A stretch of 63,992 nt of DNA, filler included, from Ministeria vibrans ATCC 50519 (taxonomy: Eukaryota > Protista > Filasterea), in the NCBI GenBank assembly GCA_943704425.1. It is 7 parts of 7 records of this genome, joined end to end, with 100 filler letters (N's around TTAATTAATTAA, not from the genome) between each part and the next. Parts side by side here need not be neighbours in the genome. Positions count along the whole stretch, not along the records: positions 1 to 27,016 come from CALSCP010002424.1; 6 more parts are not named here. One strand, given 5' to 3'. A program made the translations under genes and the position numbers. The notes beneath the pieces were generated by a model, which was given only the letters and a program-made list of their open reading frames with translations, was not told where the DNA came from and did not search any database. Below are positions 5,701 through 8,158 of the stretch, one piece after another. The number at the start of each line of letters is the position of its first letter. Position 1 is the stretch's first letter.

Positions 5701-8158
5701 GGGTGAAGGGCATGCTATGACTGAAGTGGCGGGGGTGGTGATCATGACGGTGGACGCAGGAGATGACAGAGCCAAAGTGTCCGTCGTCGTCACAGAAGTA
5801 ACGCGTGGGGCAGAGTGAAGCCCTGTTCCGACAGCGGATGGCCCTGCAACACTCCCACCATAATCTCCGGCCCCTTCCTCCTCTTCTACAATGACCCACT
5901 GTTTCTCTTCTTCGTCCTCTTCTTCACCTTCTTCCTCCTCTGTCTCTCCACTCAAGACTCCCGCCAAGCGAGATTCGTCCAATGGCACCGTCTCAAACTT
6001 GCTCATTCCCTCATCGAACGTCATGCGCACTTTGTACATGCGAGTCGCCAATGAGCGGTCCTCGTCGCCTGGAAGCTTATCGCCTCGCAGTGCAGCCACA
6101 AGAGCAGTCTTGCCTGCTCTCGTTGCGCCCAGGAACAGTACTTTGATCGAGCGTGGTATCACCGAGCCGCGAGCCATTGCAGAAGCAAATGCGTTCAGGA
6201 ACGCAGCATTTCTGGAAGGAGAGTAAAAGACAGCGGTTCAACAGACGCATTCTTTTTTCAAGTGAATTGAAAGATTACGGAAGATTAAAATCGCCAATAA
6301 GCCACTCTTGACGCTGACCGTCGCCGGAGATGGCACTAAACGCGCTTCCATCGGTGGAGACTTCAAATTTATCAACATCCCTATCATTAGATAGATCAAC
6401 ACACAAACTCTATACAAAAACTACTGTTGTCATACGGAAGATTGCACGTCAATGTACTGATTCGTGTTCCCCGCACAATGCTCCACATTTTGATCTTCGT
6501 GTCATGAGAGCAACTGTAAATGGTCTTTCCATCACGAGACACACACACCCGACCGACAGAACTAAAAACACAATCCTTTTAGTGTCAATATCATATTTCT
6601 TTTTCATTTCCTACTCTTTGTGACCCACAAACGTGCGCACACATTCTCCTGTTTGCACATTCCACACTTTCACCGTCGCGTCTGCTGAACTACTGATTAC
6701 CAGTGACTCATCCGGCGAGAACACTGCTGAGTTGACCGCACTGCAGAAATAACGTTAATCTTAGGGAGTTCACTACTCCCTTCACTCTCTTACTCCGTAT
6801 GACCAGTGAGAGTTTTTGTGCACTTTCCACTGTCAGCTGACCAGAGTTTGATTGTAGTGTCGCTTGATGTACTGAGAATGGTCTTTCCGTCGACGGAAAA
6901 TCGCACTGAATTCACACCTCTAAACAAAATAAATAATTATAATAATAATAATAAAATTAATAATAATAATATTAATTACACGTAATTAATAATAATAATT
7001 ATTATTAATTATATTTTTATTATTATTATTATTATTATTATTATTATTATTATTATTATTATTATTATTATTATTATTATTATTATTATTATTATTATTA
7101 TTATTATTATTATTATTATTATTATTATNNNNNNNTTATTATTATTATTATTATTATTATTATTATTATTATTATTATTATTATTATTATTATTATTATT
7201 ATTATTATTATTATTATTATTATTATTATTATTATTATTATTATCCTTGTTAGTTTCAGACGCCACTAAAGTATTCACTCTCTTTTTCGTACTTGGTATG
7301 TCCCTCAAGTGTCATTTCAAGCTCTTTCCTCTCAATGTCCCACACTTTCACTGTCTTGTCATAAGACCCACTGAGTGCTTTCTTTCCATCCGATGAGAAC
7401 TGGACGTCCCACACAATGCTACAAAAAGAGTAAATTTGAGGTCAAGTCCAAAACAACACCTATCGTACTCTGAGTGGCCTTCGAAAGTCACTTGGCATTC
7501 TTCGCTTTTAATGTCCCACAGTTTCAGCGTTTTGTCATACGCGCCACTCAGGGCCTTTTCACCATTGGGAGAGAACACTCCACTGGTGACGCTGCTACGT
7601 TTACAACCACAGTATCATTAATAATAAAAATATTTTCATAATAATATAATAATAATCTTACATTTGGTGTCCTTTCAGTGACTTTTGACACTCTCCACTG
7701 TTCAAATCCCACACTCTCAGTAGGGATTCGCTGCAACAGCCAAGAAGGTGCTTTCCATCAAAGGACACATCAACACTGTGAATGACACTAACAGAGTAAC
7801 ACACAGATTTGTTTGCGGGCGAGTGAGAAGAACCAGTGTGCAAAAGAGCCCTGTGTGCTTACGGTGAGGGCTCGGGAACCTCTGAGTGCGGCGCGTCAAG
7901 GCAGTGGGCGCGCGAGAGGTCGGCGGTGTGCCACACCCAGGGCGCACTGCTGTCGAACCCTCCGCCGATGATCCACTGCTCTCTGGGCGTCAGGCACAGG
8001 CCGTACATGTGCTCGCCGTGTCCCCCCACGGTCGCCAGCGCACCGTCGATCTGCTCGCGGCCATCGTCGCGTTCACTGAACACAACCACAGAATGGGCGC
8101 CTGATGCTCCAACCGTCGTGTAGACGACCGCCGAGTCTCGAATTCGCGTGTAAGGCAT
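2788..8158 (-). CDS. WD40-repeat / Roc GTPase / COR / C-terminal caspase-like (peptidase C14) fusion protein, 11 exons, 1485 aa
   Basis: Exons 8158-7863, 7787-7662, 7594-7469, 7418-7293, 6919-6794, 6740-6615, 6561-6436, 6380-6279, 6211-5439, 5377-3689 and 3629-2788 splice in frame via GT-AG introns (4458 nt total). WD40 repeats (e.g. FSPNGEKALSGAYDKTLKLWD...GH); Roc G1 GATRAGKT, G3 DFAG, YVIVFDLS, G4 VGTHVD; caspase fold ALVVGVSTY...HLIGHG...IGDFCNSG. A further upstream exon cannot be excluded. Confidence 0.88.
7016..7243. repeat. (TTA)n microsatellite in an intron of the WD40-Roco gene
   Basis: Pure trinucleotide tract with a small gap. Confidence 0.95.

Follow-up and report, generated by a model that had tools for sequence, protein, structure and literature searches.

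In the fungus Podospora anserina, the HET-E, HET-D and NWD (HNWD) proteins are NACHT-WD40 receptors of non-self (PMC1805685, PMC2873952). Positively selected codons of the NWD genes fall at positions 7/9 and 25/27, two pairs that flank conserved residues, and 55 residue combinations are found in 69 WD repeats (PMC1805685). In the brown algae Ectocarpus and Saccharina, the leucine-rich repeats (LRRs) of ROCO proteins are encoded by 72-bp exons of phase 2, and in Ectocarpus the introns are littered with spare and decayed repeat exons (PMC3341825, PMC11378527). Prokaryotic conflict systems based on AP-GTPase (Roc)-COR proteins carry variable repeats and effector domains (PMC8195603, PMC7159879). 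The subject here is a gene of the filasterean Ministeria vibrans ATCC 50519 (GenBank assembly GCA_943704425.1), called the Roco-caspase gene, whose predicted product carries a WD40 propeller, a Roc-COR GTPase and a caspase-like peptidase, in that order. Positions count along the window, that is, the whole stretch of 63,992 nucleotides (nt) that was analysed, and the gene lies in the part taken from CALSCP010002424.1 (1 to 27,016). An earlier reading of this stretch, the first-pass annotation, had cited as precedents the brown-algal ROCO LRRs (PMC11378527, PMC3341825) and the HET-E/NWD WD repeats (PMC1805685); both exist as cited.

Taken as a whole, the locus is probably best explained as encoding an NLR-like death or immune receptor, whose sensor has a fixed plan of one blade per exon and has been diversified at the top face of the propeller. 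The gene runs from 8158 to 2788 on the minus strand, with 11 exons and 4458 coding nt (1485 codons plus stop), and an in-frame stop lies upstream of the ATG at 8158. Its parts are the following.

Exon 1, 7863-8158, minus strand: start codon, N-terminal segment and one or two degenerate WD40 units without an intron between; phase 2 end (cc/gtaagc).
Cassette 1, 7662-7787, minus strand: 126 nt, phase 2-2, one WD40 blade; PF00400 22.1 bits.
Cassette 2, 7469-7594, minus strand: 126 nt, phase 2-2, one WD40 blade; PF00400 31.9 bits.
Cassette 3, 7293-7418, minus strand: 126 nt, phase 2-2, one WD40 blade; PF00400 36.8 bits.
Intron 4 of the gene, between cassettes 3 and 4, 6920-7292, minus strand: 373 nt, with an (ATT)n microsatellite and an assembly N gap; the sole long intron of the array.
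Cassette 4, 6794-6919, minus strand: 126 nt, phase 2-2, one WD40 blade; PF00400 34.8 bits.
Cassette 5, 6615-6740, minus strand: 126 nt, phase 2-2, one WD40 blade; PF00400 37.5 bits.
Cassette 6, 6436-6561, minus strand: 126 nt, phase 2-2, one WD40 blade, without GH; PF00400 24.9 bits.
Exon 8, 6279-6380, minus strand: 102 nt, symmetric phase 2-2; the last, shorter WD40 unit, 3' of cassette 6.
Exon 9, 5439-6211, minus strand: first half of the Roc G domain, with the P-loop GATRAGKT, a low-complexity insert rich in acidic residues and Thr-Pro, and the DFAG switch II; phase 1 end.
Exon 10, 3689-5377, minus strand: second half of Roc (GTHVD G4 motif) and COR, assigned by fold (AlphaFold/Foldseek).
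Exon 11, 2788-3629, minus strand: caspase-like domain (peptidase C14) with a His (HLIGHG)/Cys (DFCNSG) dyad; stop codon at 2790-2788.

The first-pass annotation had described six exact, symmetric phase-2 exons of 126 nt, each coding for one WD40 repeat, and this description stands. Read on the minus strand from 7900 to 6300, all six stretches have AG immediately before and GT immediately after them. They consist of one base, 41 codons and two bases apiece, so the flanking introns are in phase 2, and the codons restored at the junctions are all sense (I, D, K, D, D). PF00400 matches every cassette: four score 31.9-37.5 bits, above the cut-off of 27 bits, and the first and the last score 22.1 and 24.9 bits. 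The introns had also been placed just after a GH dipeptide wherever one is present, which agrees with what we find in five of the six cassettes (GH at residues 39-40); the sixth ends in CNL. The position of the intron, two residues past GH, falls in the d-a loop, and by standard WD40 topology each exon would therefore encode one complete structural blade (strands a-d). Exon 8 has counterparts in the related loci L037, L040, L026 and L027, and the paralogues' counterpart of exon 1 likewise has an intron-less WD unit.

The introns of the array are 50-67 nt long, save the 373-nt intron at 7292-6920. As the earlier reading had it, the Roc-COR-caspase part (6211-2788, 3.4 kb) has only two short introns, of 61 and 59 nt, both in phase 1. 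Splice signals, restored frames, AT-rich composition and faster divergence in older pairs are the grounds on which the introns are predicted; their GC content is 0.15-0.38 against 0.46-0.53 in the exons. The (ATT)n stretch of the long intron covers about 250 nt, broken by the N gap, and the counterpart intron is 52-114 nt long in all paralogues. The GC content at third codon positions is 0.51 in the cassette exons (0.43-0.58 in the paralogues), lower than in exon 1 (0.75), Roc (0.57), COR (0.66) and the caspase exon (0.64).

One explanation for such a layout is that the symmetric cassettes are skipped, duplicated or swapped, by splicing or by genomic shuffling, so as to give different sets of blades and different specificities. 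The WD region has eight introns, every one in phase 2, and therefore removal or addition of a cassette keeps the frame; the brown-algal precedent for ROCO LRRs is real. The other genes of the family do not follow this expectation. The cassette counts cover 10 of about 45 paralogues, those read with their 5' parts, and less than one paralogue in four was read over its full length. All 10 have exactly six cassettes, flanked by exon 1 on one side and the short final WD exon on the other, with AG/GT borders at the equivalent place in 60 of 60 cassettes, a regularity beyond chance. Fifty-two of these are 126 nt long and the other eight 123 or 129 nt, which speaks for tolerance of small in-frame changes and is a point in favor of shuffling. 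L040, a metagenome contig (ENA ERZ23497376), holds a whole gene of identical layout, again with six cassettes, so that number and order are the same in 11 of 11 genes. When the 60 cassettes are placed on a tree, labels for position change 10 times (minimum 5; mean of shuffled labels 39.2; none of 200 shuffles as low) and labels for gene 51 times; cassettes thus cluster by position and not by gene. Nucleotide identity between cassettes of the same gene averages 0.45-0.64, with a maximum of 0.72, and therefore no exon has been duplicated recently. Concerted evolution and recent exon duplication were both rejected on the tree and on these identities. The fixed number and order together with the position-wise tree indicate that the array is older than the family and has been frozen since.

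Further evidence points the same way. A hidden Markov model (HMM) scan of both strands at 21 loci found no spare or decayed cassettes in introns, on the opposite strand or out of register, in contrast to Ectocarpus; the introns at these loci are 46-132 nt long, three longer ones excepted. In general, a blade would be less easily lost from a closed propeller than a repeat from an open LRR solenoid. The genome-wide search for cassettes that had been proposed earlier was run with a profile of the six cassettes and gave 483 candidates on the contigs, 150 of which were scored, all with E<1e-8. Most candidates are open frames of 44-90 amino acids (aa), about 180 nt apart, located either on contigs with Roc-COR or on tiny ones. 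High-scoring cassettes occur on dozens of short contigs, and the many small contigs with cassettes alone leave some room for shuffling. On balance we regard skipping, duplication or swapping of cassettes as improbable. The first-pass annotation had proposed exon duplication and swapping as the source of diversity, and had itself named an invariant exon order beforehand as evidence to the contrary; neither the invariant number and order nor the per-exon phylogeny it called for bears the proposal out.

The diversity of the sensor lies instead within the blades. Per-site entropy across position-matched cassettes has sharp peaks at positions 1, 3, 19, 21 and 41, and positions 2 (V/I), 20 (D) and 26 (W) are nearly fixed, D20 and W26 being near-invariant in 58 cassettes. 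In WD40 proteins generally, the binding hotspots of the top face are R1, R1-2 and D-1, which are located by the rule eta-R1-R2-eta and by the residue before the Asp of the DHSW motif (PMC3419727). By this rule, position 3 corresponds to R1, position 1 to R1-2 and position 19 to D-1. In four phylogenetically independent pairs, 49 of 63 sites differ at positions 1, 3 and 19, compared with 111 of the 798 other sites (Fisher p=8e-27). The nonsynonymous rate (dN) at the hotspots, relative to the synonymous rate (dS) of the framework, is 26, 7.6, 2.1 and 2.5 in the four pairs (each p<0.04); dN/dS of the framework itself is about 0.2-0.6. At positions 1, 3, 19 and 21, each of the 58 full-length cassettes has a distinct four-residue combination, and W, Y, F, H and R make up 44% of the residues at positions 1, 3 and 19 compared to 15% overall.

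These values bear on the explanation that the protein has an ordinary scaffold or signalling role, in which the variable positions are unconstrained surface and the layout of the exons is without functional significance. In its favor, most WD40 and Roco proteins act as general scaffolds in signalling. However, relaxed constraint predicts dN close to dS; values of dN above dS are beyond its reach and require either diversifying selection or a directed process. Relaxed constraint at the hotspots was rejected for this reason, dN there being 2.1-26 times the framework dS. The enrichment in W, Y, F, H and R, typical binding residues, also argues against a scaffold, as do the size of the family (at least 40 paralogues), the conserved catalytic dyad in a death-protease fold and the presence of an Apaf-1-like NB-ARC-WD40 gene in the same window. 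A scaffold role thus appears very improbable indeed. Purifying selection on surface residues, which the earlier reading had listed among the outcomes that would speak against it, is clearly not what its proposed dN/dS analysis gives, since the opposite is seen. Of its overall inference, the part that concerned variable recognition by a diversifying sensor is strongly supported by the top-face hotspots, and the part that attributed it to exon shuffling fails on the fixed array.

The comparison with the HNWD receptors can be made at this level. In both, the WD40 propeller is the variable sensor of a receptor family with a death-inducing NTPase, a function that is proposed here by analogy. In both, the variable residues form pairs in the d-a loop and the b-c turn, at 7/9 and 25/27 in Podospora and at 1/3 and 19/21 here, with a spacing of 18 residues in either case, and nearly every repeat has its own combination (55 of 69 in Podospora, 58 of 58 here). 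Positive selection at top-face positions of the d-a loop and b-c turn, the mark of the fungal type, is found here by pairwise counts. The fungal repeats, however, are near-identical, evolve in concert, vary in number and have no introns between them. None of this is seen here, where the repeats are old (45-64% nucleotide identity), six in number and encoded by one exon each. The switch is Roc-COR instead of NACHT, and the effector is caspase-like instead of HET.

A directed process could be an alternative to selection, and it is best considered with the clearest pair of paralogues, L021 and L029. Their five introns are identical at 258 of 259 positions, and their six exons differ at 45 of 756 bases. 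The differences are concentrated: 33 of 108 nt in hotspot and junction codons, 12 of 648 nt in the other exon sequence and 1 of 259 nt in the introns. Several hotspot or junction codons have changed at all three bases. Their upstream flanks are unrelated, which marks the two as true paralogues and led to rejection of the possibility that they are haplotigs. Most of the pair is 96-99% identical. In the C-terminal part of COR and at the 3' end (oriented positions about 6300-6900 and 7950-8450), the two are very diverged or cannot be aligned, with 120-130 differences per 150 nt; these stretches represent either a replaced segment or an indel-rich region within COR.

The sole sign of exchange in the array keeps the register. 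In L021/L030, identity is 0.80-0.93 from cassette 3 through intron 3 and cassette 4 to intron 4, and 0.58-0.75 in the outer cassettes and introns. When L021/L030 and L029/L030 are taken together, identity is 0.89-0.94 in cassettes 3-4, 0.80-0.87 in introns 3-4, 0.75 in cassette 1 and 0.56-0.63 in introns 1 and 5. The mosaic similarity of L021 and L029 to L030 suggests in-register gene conversion.

Hotspot codons might then be diversified by a directed process, either by very short conversion patches from near-identical paralogues or cassette fragments, or by targeted mutagenesis. The excess of differences and the whole-codon changes in L021/L029, the L021/L030 mosaic and the dozens of short contigs with high-scoring cassettes are in keeping with it. 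Against it, no donor sequences have been identified, the estimate of intron divergence amounts to a single difference, and strong diversifying selection after a recent duplication gives an equal picture in the fungal NWD genes (PMC1805685). We consider a directed process of this kind unlikely on the whole. The more specific proposal that hotspot codons are rewritten, by in-register patches drawn from the at least 40 paralogues and the cassette fragments or by codon-targeted mutagenesis, seems to us quite unlikely. To our knowledge, no mechanism with codon-level targeting exists in eukaryotes. If rewriting did take place, the Roco-caspase family would be a protist counterpart of templated receptor diversification.

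The domains downstream of the propeller had been named as Roc-COR and caspase in the first-pass annotation, and this agrees with our results, which rest on Pfam for WD40 and on fold for the Roc-COR and caspase-like parts. The motifs of a Ras-like G domain, as expected of a Roco protein, are legible in the sequence (GATRAGKT, DFAG and GTHVD). Pfam matches to Roc are 16-26 bits, under the cut-off of 27 bits, and that of exon 9 (PF08477) is partial, at 16 bits; the scores stay low since both an intron and the low-complexity insert interrupt the domain. A profile of exon 10 finds a weak match to LRRK2 Roc in PDB (E=0.065). Pfam finds no match to COR-A or COR-B in the gene, the COR being too diverged for Pfam. 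The AlphaFold model of exon 10 has a mean predicted local distance difference test (pLDDT) score of 79, and its top 28 Foldseek matches in PDB are LRRK1 (1e-7), the Roco protein of C. tepidum (6hlu/3dpu/3dpt), LRRK2 and Roco2 of M. barkeri; the nearest clusters of the ESM Atlas are COR-A/Roc. By its modelled fold, not by a sequence model, the protein is a member of the Roco family, with the Roc-COR tandem.

Exon 11 narrowly passes the Pfam cut-off for PF00656 (23.0 against 21.4 bits). The His of HL(I/L)GHG and the Cys of DFC(N/W)SG are invariant in 10 aligned paralogues, and in alignments they fall on the His and Cys of both Arabidopsis metacaspase-4 and GSU0716. A sequence-profile search of PDB gives a weak metacaspase match. 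The model of exon 11 has a predicted template modelling (pTM) score of 0.82, and Foldseek matches it to GSU0716, caspases 3/7/8/9, MALT1 and metacaspase-4. The model thus places the domain in the caspase-hemoglobinase fold, and with its His-Cys dyad it belongs to peptidase C14 and is a predicted protease.

How such a protein might have arisen and might work can be outlined. The unit of exon plus intron was most likely duplicated in tandem in ancient time, before the family expanded, and the number of six cassettes and their order would have remained unchanged since the expansion. Recognition diversity would have come from gene duplication followed by very fast replacement at the top-face positions 1, 3 and 19, and at 21 and 41, and in-register gene conversion between paralogues may contribute. 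The variable top face would bind a ligand, either non-self or a guarded self protein. Binding would free the Roc-COR switch, which would change its nucleotide state and dimerise or oligomerise. The C-terminal caspase-like domains might then be activated by proximity, and the outcome could be proteolysis together with cell death or defence. By analogy, the product would be a single-chain equivalent of Apaf-1 plus caspase, or of the fungal NACHT-WD40 receptors, with Roc-COR replacing the STAND ATPase.

The logic of a WD40 sensor, a nucleotide-dependent oligomerising switch and a caspase effector is shared with Apaf-1, the apoptosome and other STAND-WD40 proteins. Unlike in Apaf-1, the switch is a Ras-like Roc-COR GTPase and not an AAA+/STAND ATPase, the sensor is N-terminal, and the caspase-like domain resides in the same chain instead of being recruited through CARD. 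With the brown-algal LRR-ROC-COR and NB-ARC-TPR (tetratricopeptide repeat) genes, the locus shares a Roco GTPase whose sensor repeats precede Roc-COR in the chain, single-repeat exons separated by phase-2 introns, positive selection on the ligand-binding face and lineage-specific expansion. It differs from them in having a closed WD40 propeller in place of an open LRR or TPR solenoid, a fixed exon number with a phylogeny by position where the algal exons are shuffled, introns and an opposite strand free of spare exons, and a C-terminal caspase-like domain, the brown-algal ROCOs being reported as LRR-ROC-COR only. The prokaryotic AP-GTPase-COR systems also have fast-evolving repeats on one side and an effector on the other, and caspase-like peptidases are common effectors there, but they are bacterial, intron-less and mostly use LRRs.

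We read the family, by this analogy, as NLR-like death or immune receptors built to a variant plan. Several considerations weigh against such a reading. The immune or cell-death function is purely inferential. Constitutive splicing is assumed, and sequence rules are the source both of the blade count (8 or 9 units) and of the top-face placement of the variable residues. Positions 1, 3 and 19 were defined beforehand but 21 and 41 were picked from the data, and the dN/dS values are pairwise counts rather than estimates from a codon-site likelihood model. Several paralogue loci have N gaps exactly across the WD region, and other cassette numbers may occur at unread loci and on the tiny contigs.

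The extent of the family was estimated with the protein encoded by exon 10, which gives 76 matches in its own assembly (29.7 Mb, 2860 contigs), at about 45 loci and with about 60% identity. We conclude that this genome has at least 40 Roc-COR paralogues. Some of them lack a WD region. At L023, a frame of 606 aa upstream of Roc-COR (3950-5767, minus strand) carries a second Peptidase_C14 domain (24.1 bits) N-terminally in place of the cassettes, so that there is a caspase-like domain at both ends. At L038 (3-4831, plus strand), two long frames, one with LRR_8 and one with a sub-threshold Roc and NB-ARC (34.9 bits), lie directly upstream of an intron-less Roc-COR-caspase frame of 1075 aa; they are either an adjoining LRR-GTPase-STAND gene or part of a larger fusion. 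On contig C2017 (48305-48802, plus strand), an intron-less run of four cassette-like WD40 units, arranged head to tail and repeating every 123-129 nt, is found inside a frame of 1092 aa. Outside this genome, a word search with the COR exon returned only 8 metagenome fragments, and one with the intron-less 1075-aa paralogue, aimed at full-length or transcript-derived proteins, gave no match at all. An exhaustive HMMER pass over 1.84 billion representatives found 9 proteins at E<=1e-3, 4 of them below 1e-10. As judged by these searches, the family has almost no detectable sequence relatives elsewhere.

The window also holds an intron-less frame of 1406 aa at 22301-26521 on the plus strand, 14 kb from the Roco-caspase gene, which is Apaf-1-like: it matches NB-ARC (59 bits), an APAF-1-like winged helix and the APAF helical domain, and has weak matches to a WD40-type propeller. 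The genome therefore also holds the classical STAND version of such receptors. From 26525 to the edge of the piece (plus strand), a frame starting with the P-loop GAPGCGKST is cut by the edge. Between the Roco-caspase gene and this pair are a MAP kinase-like gene at about 8648-11534 (minus strand; HRDLKPNN and other kinase subdomain motifs), broken by an N gap, a long (GA)n stretch and 12-nt repeats, and a cyclin-dependent kinase-like gene with a PSTAIRE motif at 13080-14243 (plus strand), both assigned by motif reading, as well as a frame of 159 aa with ankyrin repeats at 14935-15414 (minus strand; Pfam Ank 54.9 bits).

We found no published description of a single chain that combines WD40, Roc-COR and caspase domains, nor of a system that unites traits of the fungal HNWD and the brown-algal ROCO receptors in this manner. 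If the proposed reading is true, M. vibrans has a large receptor family on an undescribed plan, in which Roc-COR joins a WD40 sensor to a caspase-like executioner, whereas the NLR-like receptors of animals, plants, fungi and bacteria use a STAND ATPase. The four-site diversification that the family has in common with the fungal heterokaryon-incompatibility receptors would then be a striking residue-level convergence on the WD40 fold. Phase-2 introns with one repeat per exon occur both here and in the brown algae, but the open solenoid shuffles its exons, whereas the closed propeller would keep a frozen array and vary by point replacement. Since there is shuffling in the brown-algal LRR genes but not here, exon layout alone is no predictor of shuffling. 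Residues 1, 3 and 19 of each blade would provide defined targets for swaps of specificity, and a sensor, switch and protease in a single chain may offer a system for learning how Roc-COR, the core of LRRK2, passes a signal.

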